The notes below the pieces were generated by a model. The model was not told the DNA's origin. It did no database searches and saw only the letters and a program-made list of their open reading frames with translations. Of a stretch of DNA of 64,000 bases, positions 1,382-55,743 are shown piece after piece. The stretch's first letter is position 1. Every line of letters starts with the position of its first letter. A program made the position numbers and the translations under genes. The stretch lies in the sequence record LC680885.1. The stretch is one strand, 5' to 3'.

Positions 1382-2131
1382 ATGATTATGAATAAGGAGA
1401 CTTTGAATTTTATGTATAAAGAAGATGAAATGAATACAGGTCATATAGTTGCTGATTGTGATGAAGTTTTAGTAAATATTTCCCCTAAGATAGTTCAATT
1501 AATGCATGAAGATTTTGATTATTACAGTCAATTCTTTAGACTATCTCCAGAGTATAATTACGGTACTCATTACAATACAGTTCTTAATCGTCCTGAATAT
1601 TATATTGACCAATGGTTAGTAAGAAAAGATGTTTATGAAAGATTTTCTGAAGATGAAGTTAATGAAGCTAGAAATAGGTTACAAAATGAAATTATATTTA
1701 AAAAAGATTTATACGATACATTAGAACCAACAAATTTAGCTAAAAGTTTATCATATACAATCAATACACCTTTAATGAATAGATTATCAATTGTAACTAA
1801 AACTTCTGATAATAACTTAAAATCTAAAGAGAAATTTTTGAAAACTTTATTTAGAGGAAGTATGGAAAAGGTTGATATTTATTATCTTGAATCAGATGAA
1901 AAGAAATCAGATGTAATTAATACATTAGGTTATGTTACTAGAATATATGAGGATGAAGTTAGTAATATTAAAGACATTATTATGAATTGTGATAATGTTA
2001 TGCAAACTGGCATCGATATTCCTTCATTAGGATATAACCAAAAATTAGATGAAGCAACTATTATGAAAGCTAAAGAAAAAGAAATAGACTTAAATTATTT
2101 TAGTTATATGAGTAATAGTTTAGTTAATTAA
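1382..2131 (+). CDS. HAD-superfamily phosphatase, 5'(3')-deoxyribonucleotidase-like
   Basis: N-terminal HIVADCDEVLVN fits HAD motif I (DxDxV). Later IVTKT and IYEDE resemble motifs II and IV. Confidence 0.6.
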   Translation: MIMNKETLNFMYKEDEMNTGHIVADCDEVLVNISPKIVQLMHEDFDYYSQFFRLSPEYNYGTHYNTVLNRPEYYIDQWLVRKDVYERFSEDEVNEARNRLQNEIIFKKDLYDTLEPTNLAKSLSYTINTPLMNRLSIVTKTSDNNLKSKEKFLKTLFRGSMEKVDIYYLESDEKKSDVINTLGYVTRIYEDEVSNIKDIIMNCDNVMQTGIDIPSLGYNQKLDEATIMKAKEKEIDLNYFSYMSNSLVN

Positions 2132-6975: not shown

Positions 6976-7584
6976 ATGGATTTAAAAGAGAATAAATTTT
7001 ATTATAATAAAGATATTAATGAGCTTTTTATAATTGGTAAGGATGAAAGTGATATTAACGATAAGATAAATAAATTCTATTATAAAAAATTATTAGAAAA
7101 AAATTTAGATTATCATGGTTTAATTAATAATCTTTATTATAATAGAAATATAAATTTTGATTTAATGGATGATGACGATATATATTTTAGTAATATGTAT
7201 AATGGAATTAGAGAATATATTAAGGTGAGTTATGTAGAATTTTCATGTACAAATTTTGAAGATAATGAAGTAATATTACAGTTAGATACTTTTATTGATA
7301 AAAGCAATGATAAAAATCTTTTAGAAGTTCATAAAGATTCGCATGGTGTTACCATAACAATGGTAAAAGGTTTTTATGAAAAAGATCTTATAAATTATAA
7401 TGAATACAAAAATATTTTAGACAAATTATCTGATCTGTTTGACACAATGCTTAAAGAAGAAAATGATGGAAATATTAAAATCTTTATAAATGATATTGAT
7501 ATATTTGAACCTTATGCATATTTTAGAGAGTTAGAAGACGAAAGAGGAATTAAAAATATTTTGGTTAAGAAAAATTTTATATAA
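6976..7584 (+). CDS. Hypothetical, conserved-terminus family
   Basis: N-terminus KFYYNKDINELFII; C-terminus YFRELEDERGIKNILVKKNFI. Confidence 0.85.
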   Translation: MDLKENKFYYNKDINELFIIGKDESDINDKINKFYYKKLLEKNLDYHGLINNLYYNRNINFDLMDDDDIYFSNMYNGIREYIKVSYVEFSCTNFEDNEVILQLDTFIDKSNDKNLLEVHKDSHGVTITMVKGFYEKDLINYNEYKNILDKLSDLFDTMLKEENDGNIKIFINDIDIFEPYAYFRELEDERGIKNILVKKNFI

Positions 7585-7598
7585 AGGAGATAGATATA

Positions 7599-8219
7599 AT
7601 GGATGTAAATGAATATATAAATAATCATGATTTTTATAGAGTTGGGAATGACGGTCAAGTATTTGTATTTAATAAAGATATATCAAAAGATGAATTAAAT
7701 TCTAAAATATTTACTAAATTATTTTCATGCGAAAATATAGGAATTATACTGTCTGAATGTGGTCATTATATAATAGATGGAAATAATATATTCTTAAGAA
7801 ATAATGATAAAATATTATTAGTCGAAAATATGACTATTGATATAAGTTTATTTAAAGATGATCTAATTGAATTAAATTTTATATTAAATATTGAATCTGA
7901 TCTTTATTCAAAAATTGGTCCTTTTGAAAAAGATAATCATGATCCTTTTTATTATTATAATACTATTATTCAAATAGAAAATAAAGATAACTTTCAACAT
8001 GAATTAATTTCTCATATAACAAATCATTTTAATAAAATGAGTGATGTTGATTTAATGCTTTTAACTACTAAAAATGAAATTAGATTTAATAAAGATTATA
8101 GTATTAATAAAAAATGTATTGATTTTAAATGTAATTTTAATGAAATTTATAAAATATTTAATAAATTAGAAGATGAAAAAGAAATTAAGAAATATATAGT
8201 AAGAGAAAATTTTAAATAA
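7599..8219 (+). CDS. Hypothetical, conserved-terminus family
   Basis: C-terminus IFNKLEDEKEIKKYIVRENFK. Confidence 0.85.
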   Translation: MDVNEYINNHDFYRVGNDGQVFVFNKDISKDELNSKIFTKLFSCENIGIILSECGHYIIDGNNIFLRNNDKILLVENMTIDISLFKDDLIELNFILNIESDLYSKIGPFEKDNHDPFYYYNTIIQIENKDNFQHELISHITNHFNKMSDVDLMLLTTKNEIRFNKDYSINKKCIDFKCNFNEIYKIFNKLEDEKEIKKYIVRENFK

Positions 8220-19057: not shown

Positions 19058-19073
19058 AAAAGGACGGTTTTAT

Positions 19074-19226
19074 ATGGATAAAAAGAAATTATGGATATTG
19101 ACAGGTATAACTTTTTTAACATCTCTCACAGTAAATTTCATTATTTTATATTATAAAGATAAATATAAAATGGATGATATTGATACAGCAGAAGATCCAT
19201 TTATGAAAGGTCCATTATTTATATAA
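19074..19226 (+). CDS. Small single-pass membrane protein (50 aa, not in the ORF track)
   Basis: SD AAAGGA; MDKKKLWILTGITFLTSLTVNFIILYYKDKYKMDDIDTAEDPFMKGPLFI*. Confidence 0.65.
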   Translation: MDKKKLWILTGITFLTSLTVNFIILYYKDKYKMDDIDTAEDPFMKGPLFI

Positions 19227-19235
19227 TTTAAATAT

Positions 19236-19267
19236 TGCCAAACATTCTTTAAATAGAGTGTTTGGCA
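19236..19267 (+). terminator. Terminator hairpin
   Basis: TGCCAAACA / TGTTTGGCA followed by T-rich tract. Confidence 0.7.
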
Positions 19268-19349
19268 TTTTATATTTTAATTTTTTATGAAATTTAAGTA
19301 ACGATTAAATTATCAAAGTAGCAATTGAATTGAGGAGTGTTCAAAGATA

Positions 19350-49001: not shown

Positions 49002-49418
49002 TTATGCCATTCCTTTCCGTATTTAATTTTATTGATTAATATATTTATATTACTTTTATTTTATAATATTATTCAATAAATTTCCTATATACAATAGTTT
49101 TGATTACTATCATTATGTATTTTAATTGGATTTATAAAAATAAAATAACGAACTATGTGAGTTATTTTTAAATACATTTTTATGAAATAAAAATGTGTAC
49201 TATCCCCTCATAATATTTTAATTTATATAAATATACTATAAGAATAGTATATTTATTATTATAATATTTTATTATAATATAATTATAATATTCCGGACAC
49301 TTTCAAATTTTTTATCACATAATGGTACAAATTTATAATTTTTTAAATAATTAATATAAAAATATTTATTAACTTCATACATATTGTTTAATTATATAAA
49401 AATTATAAAATACTCAGT

Positions 49419-49430
49419 AACATCTAAATA
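49419..49430 (+). promoter_or_regulatory. Late promoter AACA-N6-TA
   Basis: AACATCTAAATA upstream of TTG 49462. Confidence 0.7.
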
Positions 49431-49461
49431 TCAATAAAATAATGAAAGAAGTGAAAATAAA

Positions 49462-50826: not shown

Positions 50827-52920
50827 ATGGAGATGAAATGGATAATGTTAGGTAAAGAAATAATGAGAAGATCTGAAATAATTTACGATGATACGGATAT
50901 AAAAACTGTTTTAAATTTAGATCCGGATAAAGATTACATAAATGAAGAAGAGGATATCGAATATATCTGTCCTAAACATGGTAAACAAAAAAGAAAAATA
51001 AAACAACATTTAGAAAAGAAAGGTTGTTTCGAGTGTCAATACGATAATAAGTCTAAAAAGACTAAAGGTAAAGATTTATTAGGAGAGTTTTACAAAAGAT
51101 TTGGAGAAGATGTTTTTGATTATCCAGATATAGAAGAAGATCGTGTATATTCATCTAGAGAAAAAATAAAGATAGTTTGTTTTAAACATGGAGAGTTCAC
51201 TAGACAAATTAGAGAACATAATACAAAAGCTAAAATATGTGATAAATGTAAATTAGAGGATGGAGGAAAAGATTTTAAAAAGAAACAATTTAAAGAAAGA
51301 TTGAGAAATGAAAATTATGAAATGTATAAGATTACCGATTTTTCTGAGACTGTATTTGAAGGGTTAACTAATTTTATGTATGTTAGATGTAAAAAACATG
51401 ATACGATTAACAAAATACAACCTAGATCATTACTAAGTAAGAATAGTAATGGGTGTTCAAAATGTAGAAGTGAAAAACTATTAAAAAGTAGAAGATCTAA
51501 TAACAAGGTATATAACGTGGAAGATATTTTTAACATATATAAACAAAAAGGAAATCTTTTAAATACTGCGACTAAATATCTTGAAAATTTAAATCTCGAA
51601 CAAAGAAAAGAGTTATTCTTAATGATATCCAAACATAATTTTGGAAATAAGTATGACTATTCTTTAATAGAAAAAGAAAAAAATAATTTTAAATCTAGAG
51701 ATAAAGTAACACTAATATGTAAAGAACATAATGTCGAATTTAAACAAAATATATCACACCACTATAAAGGTAGGTTAGGTTGTGATAAGTGTAAAAAGGA
51801 TAATGTGTCTAAAAGTATATCTGACTCATACAGATTTTCTAAAAGAACAGATATAAAACCTGAAGAATTAATAAAAGAAGTGGATAATGAAAATTTCAAA
51901 GATAATGAGATAAGAAAAATAGTGAGATTAATGAATTTTGAAGATAAAGGAAAATATTACAGATTATTAGGGAAAAAGATTAAGGGAGATAAATATAACT
52001 ATGATAAATTAGTGTATAACGGTGATAGTGTTCAGGTAACTATAACATGTAAAAAACATGGAGATTTTAAACAGGTAATATACGATCACTTTTTCCAAGA
52101 TCATAATTGTAATAAATGTTCAAAGATCGTATCCAAACAAGAACTTAAATTAAGTAATGATTTGGAAAAATATTTTACAGTTAAAAATTCTTTAAGAAGA
52201 ATATTTGAGGATAAAAGAAAAGAAATTGATATATTTATCAAAGATATTAATTTAGGTATAGAGATAAATGGTCTAAGATGGCATTCAAATGATATAAAAA
52301 AGGAGGATGAAAATAATTTTGCAAGATACCATCAATTTAGTAAAATGAATGAATCTGAATGTTTAGGTATAAAATTATTAAACTTCTATGACGATGAAAT
52401 AAATATAAAGAAAAATGAAATTTCTTATTCTAAAATAATGAAAGAAATTTTATTATTTAATAATTCCTTTAATATTAAAAATATAGATTTAAAAGATTTA
52501 GAGATGAAAAAGATATCTTATAATTTCATAAAGAAATTTTATAAGAAACATTCACTAGAATTCTTTAATGAAGAAGATAAAAATTATAGAGGAATATTCT
52601 ATAAAGGTTATATAGTTTCCGTATTCTCATTTAATAATAAGAACGAATGTCATAACTATAGCACGAATTACAATTTAAATGAAGATATTGATTTAATATT
52701 AGATGCTTACCCTAATACCATTTTTAATATTAGATCAGATTCTTATAATAGATATAAATTTCAAGATTATGGGTTCATTACAATAAATAAAACTCTACCG
52801 CAATATAGAAATTTCAATAAAAAAGGTTTAACTAAAAATAGATATAAAAGATTAGAAAAGAGGGATACTAATAATCCTAATAGAATTTATGATTGTGGTA
52901 GAACTATCATGATTTACTAA
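50827..52920 (+). CDS. Hef-like putative homing endonuclease: multiple CxKH..CxxC zinc-finger repeats + Vsr/PD-(D/E)xK-type nuclease
   Basis: Five CxKH(G/D/N)...CxxC units; EIDIFIKDINLGIEINGLRWHS; terminal RIYDCG. The real start is possibly ATG 50845. Confidence 0.75.
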   Translation: MEMKWIMLGKEIMRRSEIIYDDTDIKTVLNLDPDKDYINEEEDIEYICPKHGKQKRKIKQHLEKKGCFECQYDNKSKKTKGKDLLGEFYKRFGEDVFDYPDIEEDRVYSSREKIKIVCFKHGEFTRQIREHNTKAKICDKCKLEDGGKDFKKKQFKERLRNENYEMYKITDFSETVFEGLTNFMYVRCKKHDTINKIQPRSLLSKNSNGCSKCRSEKLLKSRRSNNKVYNVEDIFNIYKQKGNLLNTATKYLENLNLEQRKELFLMISKHNFGNKYDYSLIEKEKNNFKSRDKVTLICKEHNVEFKQNISHHYKGRLGCDKCKKDNVSKSISDSYRFSKRTDIKPEELIKEVDNENFKDNEIRKIVRLMNFEDKGKYYRLLGKKIKGDKYNYDKLVYNGDSVQVTITCKKHGDFKQVIYDHFFQDHNCNKCSKIVSKQELKLSNDLEKYFTVKNSLRRIFEDKRKEIDIFIKDINLGIEINGLRWHSNDIKKEDENNFARYHQFSKMNESECLGIKLLNFYDDEINIKKNEISYSKIMKEILLFNNSFNIKNIDLKDLEMKKISYNFIKKFYKKHSLEFFNEEDKNYRGIFYKGYIVSVFSFNNKNECHNYSTNYNLNEDIDLILDAYPNTIFNIRSDSYNRYKFQDYGFITINKTLPQYRNFNKKGLTKNRYKRLEKRDTNNPNRIYDCGRTIMIY

Positions 52921-52956
52921 TATAATACAGTGACATTAATTTGTCACTGTATTATA
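52921..52956 (+). terminator. Terminator hairpin
   Basis: 15-bp perfect stem TATAATACAGTGACA / TGTCACTGTATTATA, then a long T run. Confidence 0.8.
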
Positions 52957-53160
52957 ATTATTTTTTTTTTTATTTAGGATTTATAAATAACTATTTTAAT
53001 ATAGTAATAGATATATTTCTATTTACTATATTCGTAAATTCTTTTTCTTACTCAATCTCGTAATTTGTTTTGCGTCAAGCAGGTTACATGGGCCTCCTAC
53101 CCGTATAATATTGTACTACACCTAAGTGGATCATAGAAAATGGTCCACTTTGTTTATCAT

Positions 53161-53232
53161 TGTCCCATAGCTCAACGGTAGAGCGATCGGCTGTTAACCG
53201 GTTTGTTGAAAGTTCGAATCTTTCTGGGACAG
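53161..53232 (+). tRNA. trnN: tRNA-Asn (GTT)
   Basis: Acceptor TGTCCCA/TGGGACA, D-arm GCTC-AACGGTA-GAGC, anticodon loop CT-GTT-AA, T-arm GAAAG-TTCGAAT-CTTTC; CCA not encoded. Confidence 0.93.
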
Positions 53233-53236
53233 CTTA

Positions 53237-53313
53237 TGTTCTTGTTGCTACTGGTTAAAGCATATCGAGTAAATCGGTATTTTGTGAGTTCGACTCTCAC
53301 CAAGAACACGCCA
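53237..53313 (+). ncRNA. tRNA-like element with a non-canonical anticodon loop
   Basis: Acceptor (T)GTTCTTG/CAAGAAC(A), D-arm GCT/AGC, stem TATCG/CGGTA with loop AGTAAAT (no U33), T-arm GTGAG-TTCGACT-CTCAC, then CGCCA. Confidence 0.7.
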
Positions 53314-53315
53314 AT

Positions 53316-53660
53316 AGGATTAATCATCCTTACACTAAGGCTGCAGACTTAGTGTGAATAAAATACAGTATGAGTTATATGCCACTCTTATACTGTTAGA
53401 TTCAACTAATGCTAAGGCATATCATTAGTTGTAAAAATTTAAAACTTATATCTAATTTACGTTTAGTTATTAGATTGTATTTTTGTTAAAGAGGACTTAT
53501 TTTACTTAATTGTAATAAGTATCTGACTTTAACTTAATTGGTTTTCTAGTTTTGACCCTAACAATAAAAAACTAGACTATTAAATATTTTATTTCTTTTT
53601 AGCTCACAACTTAAAAGAAAAACTAGGTGGATCATTTTATGCTTTTTTGATCGACTAAAA
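53316..53660 (+). ncRNA. Candidate structured non-coding RNA of about nine tandem hairpins
   Basis: No ORF; consecutive stems, several with 7-9 perfect base pairs; ends just before the terminator at 53678-53708. Confidence 0.55.
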
Positions 53661-53677
53661 ACTAATAAAGCACCCTT

Positions 53678-53708
53678 ACCCTAACCTCATTAATTTGAAG
53701 GTTAGGGT
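53678..53708 (+). terminator. Terminator (CCCTAACCT family)
   Basis: ACCCTAACCT / AGGTTAGGGT. Confidence 0.75.
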
Positions 53709-53726
53709 TATTTTATACATAGTTTT

Positions 53727-53741
53727 AAATATATATTATAA
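53727..53741 (+). promoter_or_regulatory. Early phage promoter with 5' hairpin at 53745-53762
   Basis: AAATATATATTATAA. Confidence 0.8.
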
Positions 53742-53793
53742 AAATGAGATATAATTGTCTCAAATACTTTTATAATATGGAGATGAAAAAGAT

Positions 53794-55743
53794 ATGATAG
53801 GTTCAAAGATTAGAAAATCATTAAATGAAAAATTTGGTTATCATTATAAGTTTTTATTAGAAGATTTTAAGAAAGATTATGATTTAAATAATGATACAAT
53901 TATGGTAACTAAAGAAGCTAGTGACATCACAAAAGAATATAAAATAAAATCATTAAAGTATACTAAAGACATTGAAAAATTAGACAAAGACTTTAAGAAA
54001 GAGGAAGAAGAATTAAATATTAGAAAATCTAGAATTTTTAATTTAGATGAATTAGGTTTAGATGAAGACCTTAGAAACATCTGTAAGTATATAGACAGCA
54101 CTACTAAATTAAAAGTAAAAGTTAGAGAGTATAAAAAAGAAAGTAAAGAAAATATTGAATTCTTTTACAAAAATTTTGCTAATTATACTTATAATAGTGT
54201 AATATATGATATGAGTCAGTTTAAGCCATCAACAATTAGATCTAACCAGAAAGTTATATGTAGAAAACATGGTCCTTTCTTTACCACTCCAGTAGATTTC
54301 TTTATAAAGAAAAAAGGATGTCCGGTGTGTGAAAAAGAAACGGAAGAAGAAAAGAAAGATACTAGTTGGAAGGATGAATTCATAGAAAATAAAAATGAAA
54401 AAATATATCAAGAAGTAAAGGAAGAGAAAGAAAAGGAAAATAAAAAATCTAAAAAAGAAAAGGTAGATGTGAAAAAAGAAAATAAAAAACTTTTAGATGA
54501 AGTATTAAATCCACCTGAATTAGGATATTATAGAGAACCGGATAAGATACCTAATACTGAAAAAGAAAATGAGAGATTCTTGAAGAGTATTAAAGAAATA
54601 GATAGTAAATTTGAAGAACCTAAAGAAGTTGAAGAACCAAAGGAAATTGTTAAACCTAAATTAAATAAAAAGACAGTTGATCAAATAATAGGAGACGATA
54701 ATACTAATCTAAGCAGAAAAATTAGATATATAAATAAAAATATTTATACAGAAAATGAAAGACAAGATTTCTATAAAAAATTAACTGACCGCAAACATGG
54801 TAAAAATAAATATAAGATTGATAAATTTAGACCTAAGACAGTTAAAGAAAAACAAGAAGTAATTTGTCTTAAGCATGGTCCTTTTAAAGTAACAGCTGAA
54901 GAATTATTAATTAGAGGTAGACAGTGCCCTAAATGTTCTTCTACTAGTACTTCTATAACAGAAACTTTTGTAAGAGAATATATTCAGAGTTTAGATTTTG
55001 AAGTTAATAATTATGAAATAGAAGATTTAATCAAACCTTATGGCGTTGATATAGTTATTGAAAATTTAAAATTGGCTATTGAAGTTCAAGGTATCAAATA
55101 TCATTCATCTGAAACACGATCAGAGGCTTCAAATAAATATCATCAATTAAGAAAATTAAAAATGCTAGAAAATAAAGGTTATCGTTTATTGAATATATAC
55201 GATGATGAAATTCCTAATAAGAATAAAGGAATTGGTTGGGATAAATTTGGTAGATTCTTATCTGAATTAATGATGTTTGATAAAAGATTTGATATTGAAG
55301 AAATGGATACTAATTCAATAAAAATAGATACAATTAGTTATTACAAATTCAGAGAATTCTTTGAAAACTCTAGACAAGAATTTGTTACTGGTGATACAGA
55401 ATATAAAGGAGTGGTTTATAAGAATAAATTAATTTCAGTATTCTCTTATAATAAAGAAACACGAGAATGTCATAACTATCATACTATGACAAATAATAAA
55501 TTTGATTTAGAATTAATTAATAGAAAATACAAAGATTTAAAATTTATAGTTAAAAGAGATTCTTATGTGGCGTATAAAATGAAAAGTCATGATATGTTAC
55601 CAATAGCAGAAACGGAACCTGATTTCTGTAACTTTTCAAAGACTAATGGAAATAGAAAAAATAACTATATAAGACAAAAAAGAAAGGATGAAAATGATAA
55701 AAACAAAGTATATAACTGTGGAAATATAATTTTTGTATTTTAA
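53794..55743 (+). CDS. Hef-like putative homing endonuclease; paralog of 50827..52920
   Basis: CRKHGPF..CPVC and CLKHGPF..CPKC; VDIVIENLKLAIEVQGIKYHS; ECHNY; terminal KVYNCG. Confidence 0.75.
   Translation: MIGSKIRKSLNEKFGYHYKFLLEDFKKDYDLNNDTIMVTKEASDITKEYKIKSLKYTKDIEKLDKDFKKEEEELNIRKSRIFNLDELGLDEDLRNICKYIDSTTKLKVKVREYKKESKENIEFFYKNFANYTYNSVIYDMSQFKPSTIRSNQKVICRKHGPFFTTPVDFFIKKKGCPVCEKETEEEKKDTSWKDEFIENKNEKIYQEVKEEKEKENKKSKKEKVDVKKENKKLLDEVLNPPELGYYREPDKIPNTEKENERFLKSIKEIDSKFEEPKEVEEPKEIVKPKLNKKTVDQIIGDDNTNLSRKIRYINKNIYTENERQDFYKKLTDRKHGKNKYKIDKFRPKTVKEKQEVICLKHGPFKVTAEELLIRGRQCPKCSSTSTSITETFVREYIQSLDFEVNNYEIEDLIKPYGVDIVIENLKLAIEVQGIKYHSSETRSEASNKYHQLRKLKMLENKGYRLLNIYDDEIPNKNKGIGWDKFGRFLSELMMFDKRFDIEEMDTNSIKIDTISYYKFREFFENSRQEFVTGDTEYKGVVYKNKLISVFSYNKETRECHNYHTMTNNKFDLELINRKYKDLKFIVKRDSYVAYKMKSHDMLPIAETEPDFCNFSKTNGNRKNNYIRQKRKDENDKNKVYNCGNIIFVF

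Follow-up and report, generated by a model that had tools for sequence, protein, structure and literature searches.

Staphylococcus jumbo phage S6 carries, within the 64,000-nucleotide (nt) stretch of record LC680885.1 analysed here (the window), a string of nine hairpins downstream of a tRNA gene. We predict that positions 53238-53716 of the window, on the + strand, encode a structured RNA that is conserved in, and specific to, the MarsHill/S6 clade of phages. The unit has a constant 5' part, made of a tRNA-like element and a core of four hairpins (hp1 to hp4), as well as hairpin hp7, a terminator and changeable hairpin modules. The pattern of conservation points to a real phage noncoding RNA (ncRNA) and to a new family among the structured phage RNAs beside tRNA genes, apparently undescribed as far as we could find. 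That a selected RNA structure exists is very probable. For the explanation as a whole, in which such an RNA would be processed through its tRNA-like element and would then fold and bind a partner, we estimate a probability of about 0.6.

The 901 nt around the array are 100% identical to phage S6, and nine further Staphylococcus jumbo phages have the same stretch at 71-99.6% identity: PALS_2, UFV_DC4 (DC4), MarsHill, LY01, Madawaska, SA1, AH12, PB50 and Machias. All counts across phages given below refer to these ten genomes, which represent about six to seven independent lineages of a single clade. The array sits inside an 873-nt noncoding gap (52921-53793) between two open reading frames (ORFs) on the + strand, one of 697 amino acids (aa) upstream and one of 649 aa downstream. 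Six gaps between long ORFs in the window reach 180 nt, and this one is the largest and clearly the most structured, with a z of about -9.4 and -27 kcal/mol per 100 nt; the z values of the other five gaps range from -2.9 to +1.5.

The core is 126 nt long in nine phages and 127 nt long in SA1. The structure tested on its alignment comprised hp1 to hp4 and a contact between loops 3 and 4, a total of 41 pairs. In the ten phages 96.5% of the cells are paired, and compensatory changes were found in 15 of the 41 pairs. None of 500 column shuffles matched the observed pairing, the counts of compensatory pairs or the covariation score, and the number of extra pair types was not above that of the column shuffles. 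When the 3' partners were slid by 1-3 columns, only 26-39% of the cells in the core remained paired. A covariance model of the core scores 133-154 bits per phage, with a single copy per locus. Over the whole unit, 22 of 108 pairs show compensatory changes.

Sequence conservation in the core is distributed unevenly between stems and loops. When S6 is compared with AH12, SA1, PB50 and Machias, stem positions are 68-71% identical and unpaired positions 90-93% identical; in the same comparison, synonymous third positions of two flanking genes are 69-78% identical. The stems have therefore drifted at roughly the neutral rate with pairing retained, while the unpaired positions are far more conserved, which argues that loops and linkers are strongly constrained. 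Variable columns in the core linkers number 0 of 6 and 2 of 9. The near-fixed length together with the invariant linkers argues that the core, at least, acts as one folded unit. Regarding the strand, a tally of pair types in the predicted pairs gave about 29 G:U cells versus three A:C cells, and about 16 G:U cells fall in the core, where non-standard cells of all kinds together number at most 10. As G:U is common and A:C rare, the selected molecule would be + strand RNA and not DNA or the minus strand. For instance, hp3 contains a G:U pair (columns 63:80) kept in most phages that would read C:A on the other strand.

Covariation, a check named by the initial annotation, which had proposed from the letters alone that the array is a candidate novel ncRNA, differs among the hairpins. 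It is strong in hp2, hp3 and hp4 and modest in hp6 (2/15 pairs) and hp9 (1/5); hp5 and hp8, on the other hand, have none, and hp1 and hp7 carry no covariation information because they are invariant. In the loop of hp2 none of the eight columns varies, and the loop holds the palindrome CUGCAG (53340-53347). A T-loop in hp1 was considered by eye and dropped because its spacing does not fit. A weak test also gave no sign of host mimicry by the hp1 15-mer: among the matches listed, the taxonomic spread was random, as by chance, and Staphylococcus was not among them.

Most of the initial annotation stands. Each of its nine stems was located where it had been placed, and the unconstrained minimum free energy (MFE) fold of 53311-53674 yields all nine hairpins. 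The sequence folds far more stably than its dinucleotide shuffles (z = -4.55 with the terminator left out and -5.3 with it included). As had been claimed, there is no ORF of at least 30 aa within 53352-53708, no direct repeats connecting the hairpins were found, consistent with stems that share no sequence, and a terminator follows at 53679-53716. The array does lie at 53316-53660, but the unit is larger, from the start of the tRNA-like element at 53238 to the end of the terminator at 53716. The placing "after the tRNAs" holds for one true tRNA-Asn, whereas the second cloverleaf is called by neither ARAGORN nor the Rfam tRNA model. Treating the nine hairpins as one unit is right for the 126-nt core and hp7, found in 10/10 phages, but not for hp5, hp6, hp8 and hp9, which vary as whole modules. 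The central proposal of a novel structured ncRNA beside phage tRNA genes agrees with the covariation, with unpaired nucleotides conserved above synonymous sites and with the lack of an Rfam family at E <= 10. The parallel drawn with GOLLD and ROOL is valid for the location beside tRNA genes, though the RNA is related to neither family.

Directly before the core, the tRNA-like element is present in 10/10 phages. It has a 7-bp acceptor stem, a D arm with GG, a canonical T arm (UUCRAnU loop) and discriminator A; a 5-bp anticodon stem with a 7-nt loop, U33 and an anticodon are missing from 53238-53308. The 'anticodon' arm in S6 and LY01 is a 7-bp stem with a 5-nt loop, and in AH12, PB50 and Machias it is lengthened by inserts of 16-33 nt to a long hairpin. 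The cloverleaf is the MFE fold in S6, LY01, SA1, AH12 and PB50, five representatives that cover all clades. Compensatory changes occur in 3/7 acceptor pairs and 1/5 T-stem pairs, with 100% of the cells paired. ARAGORN and Rfam RF00005 leave the S6 element uncalled, and ARAGORN labels it 'tRNA-???' in SA1 and AH12. In PB50 there is a further 'tRNA-???' call with a 2-nt anticodon just past an RNA polymerase (RNAP) gene (L007 1431-1502). In their 3' halves, the tRNA-like element and tRNA-Asn are 76% identical. The tRNA-Asn gene itself is missing in four of the ten phages (MarsHill, LY01, DC4 and AH12) and is therefore dispensable for the locus.

The deletions, as well as a gene insertion in DC4, stop 3-4 nt before the tRNA-like element. 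The genome papers treat the region as degenerating tRNAs or a pseudo-tRNA, and the hairpins go unmentioned; in the DC4 paper the tRNA-like element is entered as 'pseudo-tRNA Leu' (PMC10638138). The selection pattern is at odds with this: the tRNA shape has been retained and the decoding part has not, and the element travels with the hairpin RNA. Upstream of tRNA-Asn, the stem of the leader hairpin is rebuilt with other sequence in AH12, PB50 and Machias, and a U:G wobble in S6 corresponds to U:A in MarsHill. A 13-nt direct repeat, CTA(A/G)GTGGATCAT, flanks the tRNA/ncRNA unit at 53122-53134 and 53623-53635 in the S6 subclade only; its copies form the 5' arms of the leader hairpin and of hp9. 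Next to a conserved AATAACTA...AATATAG motif, the leader also contains an AT-only hairpin or palindrome at 53001-53029, which is rebuilt as ATATAGAAATTT/AAATTTCTATAT in SA1 and as TATAATAGA/TCTATTATA in AH12. This hairpin could be an operator, a promoter element or a piece of the primary transcript.

The unit ends in an intrinsic terminator, a G+C-containing stem followed by a U-run, which was missed by a simple scan because its loop is longer than 8 nt. The same stem, (A/C)CCCTAACC...GGTTAGGG with a T-run, occurs five times in the 64 kb (33090, 44712, 53679, 55751 and 60690), and the recurrent hairpin is a stereotyped genome-wide phage terminator. Beyond it lies the early promoter of the downstream gene, one of six exact + strand copies of AAATATATATTATAAA (4236, 6894, 11894, 30825, 53727 and 56577); the leading 13 nt of this sequence are identical to the early promoter (for the virion RNA polymerase) annotated in Bacillus phage AR9. 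As a terminator and this separate promoter stand between the RNA and the next gene, the RNA is not the leader of that gene and not cis-regulatory. A scan for sigma-70-type promoters gave background-level matches and no clear promoter. The conserved GTATAAT at 53103-53109 and the conserved AATAACTA...AATATAG at 52986-53004 are promoter candidates only.

The 3' half of the array (hp5 to hp9) is modular, and when folded alone its z against dinucleotide shuffles is -2.6. Madawaska lacks both hp5 and hp6; hp5 is also missing in AH12 and has been replaced in SA1, and hp6 is truncated in LY01. The inner stem of hp6 reads ACUUAU/AUAAGU in S6 and ACUCAU/AUGAGU in SA1, and a K-turn in its internal loop was considered by eye and dropped for its misfitting spacing. 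In S6 the loop of hp7, ACCCUAAC (53555-53562), has the sequence of the 5' arm of the recurrent terminator stem and could therefore pair with the 3' arm of any such terminator. Hairpins hp8 and hp9 are limited to the S6-to-SA1 group and not conserved in AH12, PB50 and Machias. A possible pseudoknot in hp9 joins UGCUUU (53640-45) to AAAGCA (53667-72), with arms invariant in the seven phages that have them. Also in hp9, a strong Shine-Dalgarno-like UAGGUGGA is followed after 7 nt by AUG CUU UUU UGA, a mini-ORF of three codons (53639-50), and the initiation region of this mini-ORF is conserved in the S6-to-SA1 group. A conserved small protein was rejected, as the peptide is MLF* in S6 and longer and different in MarsHill and SA1, and no ORF reaches 30 aa. 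In SA1, PB50 and Machias an extra hairpin follows hp4, with unrelated stems and the common loop CUGYCAW, and SA1 has one further long hairpin.

Table 1. Features of the tRNA/ncRNA locus. Positions are those of the window unless a phage sequence is named; hp, hairpin.
Feature	Position	Strand	Basis and remarks
Intrinsic terminator of the upstream homing-endonuclease-like gene	52925..52952	+	Terminator scan; 15-bp stem and T-run; left boundary of the gap
Leader hairpin, terminator-like, followed by a U-rich run	53124..53150	+	Terminator scan; just before tRNA-Asn
tRNA-Asn (GUU), true tRNA	53161..53233	+	ARAGORN; Rfam tRNA 67.7 bits
tRNA-like element, cloverleaf	53238..53308	+	MFE fold; begins five nt after tRNA-Asn
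tRNA-like element with anticodon-arm insert	L007 (PB50) 1934-2038; L008 (Machias) 1934-2038; L006 (AH12) 1952-2038		
Conserved ncRNA core, hp1-hp4 with linkers	53311..53436	+	Alignment of ten phages; covariance model
hp1, stem AGGAU/AUCCU, loop UAAUC	53316..53330	+	All 15 nt identical in ten phages
hp2, 9-bp stem, invariant 8-nt loop GCUGCAGA	53331..53356	+	Compensatory changes in 6/9 pairs
hp3, 10-11-bp stem, loop with AUAUGCC (53377-53383)	53365..53396	+	Compensatory changes in 5/11 pairs
hp4, 9-bp stem, loop with GGCAUAU (53416-53422)	53403..53431	+	Compensatory changes in 4/9 pairs
hp5, variable module	53450..53475	+	MFE fold; no compensatory change
hp6, long hairpin, conserved internal loop GAGGA / AUCUGA	53485..53533	+	MFE fold; compensatory changes in 2/15 pairs
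hp7, GGUUUUCUAGUU ... AAAACUAGACUAUUAAA	53545..53576	+	Stem and flanks invariant in ten phages; loop varies in length and sequence
hp8, UUUCUUUU/AAAAGAAA, clade-specific module	53592..53620	+	MFE fold; no compensatory change
hp9, stem GAUCA/UGAUC (53630-52)	53624..53672	+	GACCA/UGGUC in SA1, one compensatory pair (1/5)
Intrinsic terminator ending the unit, CCCUAACCU ... AGGUUAGGG and U-run UUAUUUUAU	53679..53716	+	Stem invariant in ten phages
AR9-type early promoter of the downstream gene	53727..53739	+	Identical to annotated AR9 early promoter AAATATATATTAT; right boundary, outside the RNA

The loops of the core suggest how it might be shaped. Seven nucleotides of the hp3 loop, AUAUGCC, are complementary to GGCAUAU in the hp4 loop, and the complementarity is kept in all phages; the sole substitution in it, A to G in SA1, still pairs as G:U. 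In random loops of the same sizes and composition, the chance of at least 7-nt complementarity for this loop pair is 0.006. Loop 2 is a 6-nt palindrome with purine flanks, and its arrangement (G-CUGCAG-A) is like that of the HIV-1 dimerisation loop. Both features suggest loop-loop contacts.

We propose that the RNA would be co-transcribed with tRNA-Asn where that gene occurs. RNase P would cut 5' of the tRNA-like element and RNase Z after discriminator A, because no CCA is encoded, and the host tRNA-processing enzymes would leave an RNA of about 400 nt starting a few nucleotides before hp1. We give this processing step about an even chance. The frozen unpaired nucleotides would then act as contact surfaces, with loop 3 pairing with loop 4, within or between molecules, and the palindromic loop 2 pairing with itself in a second molecule, so that the core would take a defined tertiary or oligomeric shape. 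In the least certain step, the shaped RNA would serve as a decoy or scaffold in infection, binding and holding a factor of the host or of the phage. This fold-and-bind mechanism, which is suggested by the conservation pattern, is tentative and less likely than not. The role would be other than that of an antisense RNA or a cis-regulator of the neighbour gene.

Several observations weigh against this explanation. The sampling is shallow. The minus strand folds well too (z = -4.2), a terminator-like hairpin stands directly before tRNA-Asn, and no AR9-type early promoter was found in the window upstream of the tRNA/ncRNA unit. Processing by RNase P and RNase Z is taken from general tRNA biology. 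Whole modules are gained and lost and covariation is missing in hp5 and hp8, so independent hairpins fit the 3' half equally well as one fold. In DC4 an inserted homing-endonuclease gene has replaced the whole leader with the RNA unchanged, although the insertion is too recent to be informative. Regarding the loops, the chance of at least 7-nt complementarity rises to 0.12 when any of the 36 loop pairs is allowed, at this base composition an 8-nt loop contains a 6-nt palindrome by chance with P = 0.08, and, the loops being invariant, covariation lends no support to the pairing of loop 3 with loop 4. In addition, with hairpins of 11 bp and 9 bp on a 6-nt linker, we estimate that a full 7-bp intramolecular kiss would be strained, which leaves a partial contact within the molecule or pairing between molecules.

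The last of these points also opens a bolder version of the proposal. As the 6-nt linker is too short for a comfortable intramolecular kiss of 7 bp, it is plausible that loop 3 pairs hand-to-hand with loop 4 of a second molecule, in the manner of phi29 pRNA, and the palindromic loop 2 could join such units. In infected cells the 126-nt core might thus self-assemble into a ring, a filament or a cage. Processing would use the tRNA-like element as its handle, and the outside would display the variable 3' hairpins as binding sites. We regard this version as improbable; of what self-assembling RNAs of the pRNA, ROOL or DIS (HIV-1 dimerisation loop) kind have, the locus has the sequence prerequisites alone, namely the complementary loops 3 and 4 and the palindromic loop 2. 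If true, a phage of a major pathogen would have its own small version, built of hairpins, of the nanocages that ROOL and GOLLD form.

Other explanations of the array were weighed against the proposed processed and folded RNA. The transcript could be a precursor diced into independently acting hairpins, serving as small RNAs or as a protein sponge array. This would suit the gain and loss of whole hairpins between phages (hp5, hp6, the extra hairpin and the long hairpin of SA1) and the fact that each hairpin has its own loop sequence, with the loop of the extra hairpin resembling that of hp2 (CUGCAGA). However, independent modules do not need a core of near-constant length (126 nt; 127 nt in SA1) with invariant linkers, nor loops 3 and 4 that are mutually complementary, and we know of no bacterial pathway that dices hairpin arrays of such kind. 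Dicing is thus an unlikely account, although it keeps some weight. Far less probable is a long 3' trailer of a tRNA operon, whose hairpins would stabilise the transcript or reinforce termination for the unusual RNA polymerases of the phage. There are U-rich runs after hp5 and hp7, a terminator at the end and a terminator-like hairpin ahead of the unit; but stabilisers and terminators require stems and not invariant loops and linkers, most hairpins have no U-tract, and the trailer is kept although the tRNA that it would serve is dispensable. We consider it just as improbable that the hairpins act as DNA, for example as an origin of replication, as a site of recombination or packaging, or as the region recognised by the flanking homing endonucleases. 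Both strands fold well, two paralogous homing-endonuclease-like genes flank the gap and a third is inserted in DC4. Homing endonucleases often target conserved RNA genes, and T4 SegB cuts in the T4 tRNA region; an endonuclease target is therefore no true rival, because it is compatible with an RNA gene. The other DNA roles have to face about 29 G:U cells that would turn into C:A mismatches on the opposite strand or in a cruciform, with the reverse case found three times, and boundaries (the tRNA-like element and the intrinsic terminator) that are RNA-level signals.

The view of the region as a graveyard of decaying tRNA genes, with the hairpins as neutral leftovers, draws on the pseudo-tRNA-Leu of DC4, the loss of tRNA-Asn in four phages and the 76% identity of the two 3' halves. 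It is largely refuted already, since neutral decay gives neither 15 compensatory pairs out of 41 in the core, nor loops conserved above synonymous sites, nor a near-constant length, and the stems of 9-11 bp and loops of 8-12 nt are unlike tRNA arms; we hold it to be very improbable. The least credible alternative, with hardly any weight, is a guide-RNA array of known kind, that is, a CRISPR or TIGR stem-loop array or an RNA anti-CRISPR repeat. Some TIGR arrays, which occur in phages, consist of stem-loops in tandem whose palindromic stems vary and whose loops conserve short UG / CCA motifs (PMC12045711); here UGCCA is found in the hp3 loop and CUGCCAA in the extra hairpin of PB50. Direct repeats are absent, however, and the stems covary to keep pairing rather than turn over. 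The loops, of 5-14 nt, are too short for the two 8-12-nt spacers with box C / box D flanks by which TIGR arrays are defined (PMC12045711), and a Pfam scan of four neighbouring proteins detected zinc-ribbon and DUF559/REase-like domains only, with no Nop or Cas domain. As for CRISPR, just two-copy direct matches were found (9-29 nt, mostly below 80% identity, one of them the paralogy between tRNA-Asn and the tRNA-like element), with no 28-37-nt repeats and no repeat-spacer array.

Relatives of the RNA were sought in several collections. An Rfam 15 cmscan of the whole window at gathering thresholds found tRNA-Asn only. At E <= 10, 52900-53800 gave chance-level matches to snoRNA, miRNA and similar families, all below half the gathering score. 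With no Rfam 15 match even at this cut-off, the RNA falls outside GOLLD, ROOL and every other curated family. By blastn against 50,697 phage records, the ten Staphylococcus jumbo phages alone were recovered. Two motif patterns and a three-block loop pattern (GCTGCAGA ... TATGCCA ... AAGGCATAT) found nothing in IMG/VR, the JGI metagenomes or the GTDB genomes. The covariance model gave nothing at E < 0.05 at the syntenic sites, after the RNAP beta'-mid gene, of Bacillus phages BpSp and AR9 and Listeria phage LPJP1. Second copies of the RNA were considered and dismissed, given one covariance-model match per locus and extra BLAST places that are the common terminator stem.

In LPJP1 (L013, MZ422438.1), the RNAP beta'-mid gene is followed by 865 nt free of annotation, in which a group II intron without an ORF lies at 7227-7822 (Rfam Intron_gpII 66 bits and group-II-D1D4-5 43 bits, both above gathering), apparently outside annotated genes. 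A group II intron was also considered for the S6 region and rejected, as it matches neither Intron_gpII nor group-II-D1D4-5. Among metagenomic sequences, an S6-like contig (L015) carries the core, cut by the contig end (64.7 bits). The core was not found in two more divergent contigs with relatives of the RNAP gene (about 70% identity). In L016 (Ga0079226_10037127, 64-163), where identity at the RNAP C-terminus is about 71%, only about 100 nt separate the RNAP gene from a gene for a 645-aa endonuclease-like protein, so the tRNA/ncRNA unit is absent there, outside the GenBank clade. As far as these data reach, the RNA appears confined to one phage clade. A link to the reverse-transcriptase repeat arrays (ART) of MarsHill was examined and dropped, since those are at gp206 versus gp162-164 here and the repeat core is unenriched in the window.

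Comparison with known systems places the RNA near several of them and within none. ROOL and GOLLD are large phage and prophage RNAs near tRNA islands in which kissing contacts of conserved loops build multimeric cages, and they have loop contacts within as well as between molecules (PMC12286853). The RNA of S6 is likewise phage-encoded, non-coding, several hundred nucleotides long and beside tRNA genes, a context that is insufficient for membership; it may also share loop-loop contacts, although oligomerisation is hypothetical here. It differs in its length of about 400 nt, in being a linear string of simple hairpins instead of a multi-junction pseudoknotted fold, in its tRNA-like 5' module and in being limited to ten Staphylococcus phages. 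Species 1 and 2 of phage T4 (rnaC and rnaD) are small stable RNAs of about 120-140 nt in a tRNA cluster, freed from a common precursor by tRNA-processing enzymes, and the T4 tRNA region also holds a free-standing homing endonuclease gene. The present RNA has no detectable similarity to them, belongs to another host and phage group and has an array of about nine hairpins. To our knowledge, no function is known for GOLLD, ROOL or the T4 stable RNAs.

The layout of a tRNA-like element followed by hairpins recalls the TMERs of murine gammaherpesvirus 68, in which a non-aminoacylated tRNA-like element precedes hairpins freed by the tRNA 3'-processing enzyme. TMERs, however, are pol III transcripts of a eukaryotic virus with one to two hairpins per unit, compared with nine here, and their hairpins are pre-microRNAs, a pathway missing in bacteria. 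The pRNA of phi29, another RNA from a Firmicute phage, has two mutually complementary loops that pair between molecules to form a ring, and a pair of complementary loops is also present here. It belongs, though, to small podoviruses with protein-primed genomes and lies at the genome end, whereas S6-type phages package by terminase and nothing ties the present RNA to packaging. YrlA, an ncRNA with a tRNA-like domain that is also found in phages, has its tRNA-like part internal and closed by a Ro-binding stem; the RNA described here, unlike YrlA, matches no Rfam family, and we know of no Ro (Rsr) partner in S. aureus.

The surroundings of the unit are themselves variable. The flanking ORFs (50827-52920 and 53794-55743) are paralogs with 32% identity over 328 aa, both have zinc-ribbon motifs, and their counterparts in AR9 and DC4 are labelled 'Hef-like homing endonuclease'. 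The 649-aa ORF has a weak, sub-threshold DUF559/REase-like match, and the paralogy with the 697-aa ORF reaches across that region. The 697-aa ORF is missing from MarsHill, Madawaska and SA1, and in DC4 a third homing-endonuclease-like gene occupies the place of tRNA-Asn and the leader. The locus is a hotspot of homing-endonuclease insertion. Elsewhere in the window, the gaps 49002-49461 (460 nt) and 19058-19349 (292 nt) show a slight excess of structure (z of about -2 to -3); the former is without an Rfam match, and the RNAP gene adjoining it is intron-split in LY01, AH12 and Machias.

Structured phage RNAs beside tRNA genes are a long-standing puzzle, to which this locus would add a small member built of plain hairpins, in culturable phages and with S. 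aureus as a tractable host. As the RNA is simple, its host tractable and the predictions clear (two complementary loops, a palindromic loop and a tRNA-like handle), it would make a convenient system for studying such RNAs. The analysis would also correct the published view of the region in S6/MarsHill-type phages as merely decaying tRNA genes, since, of the tRNA-shaped elements at the locus, the 'pseudo-tRNA' is the one retained most faithfully. These phages are therapy candidates and generalized transducers, and an unannotated conserved RNA gene in their genomes would be worth knowing.

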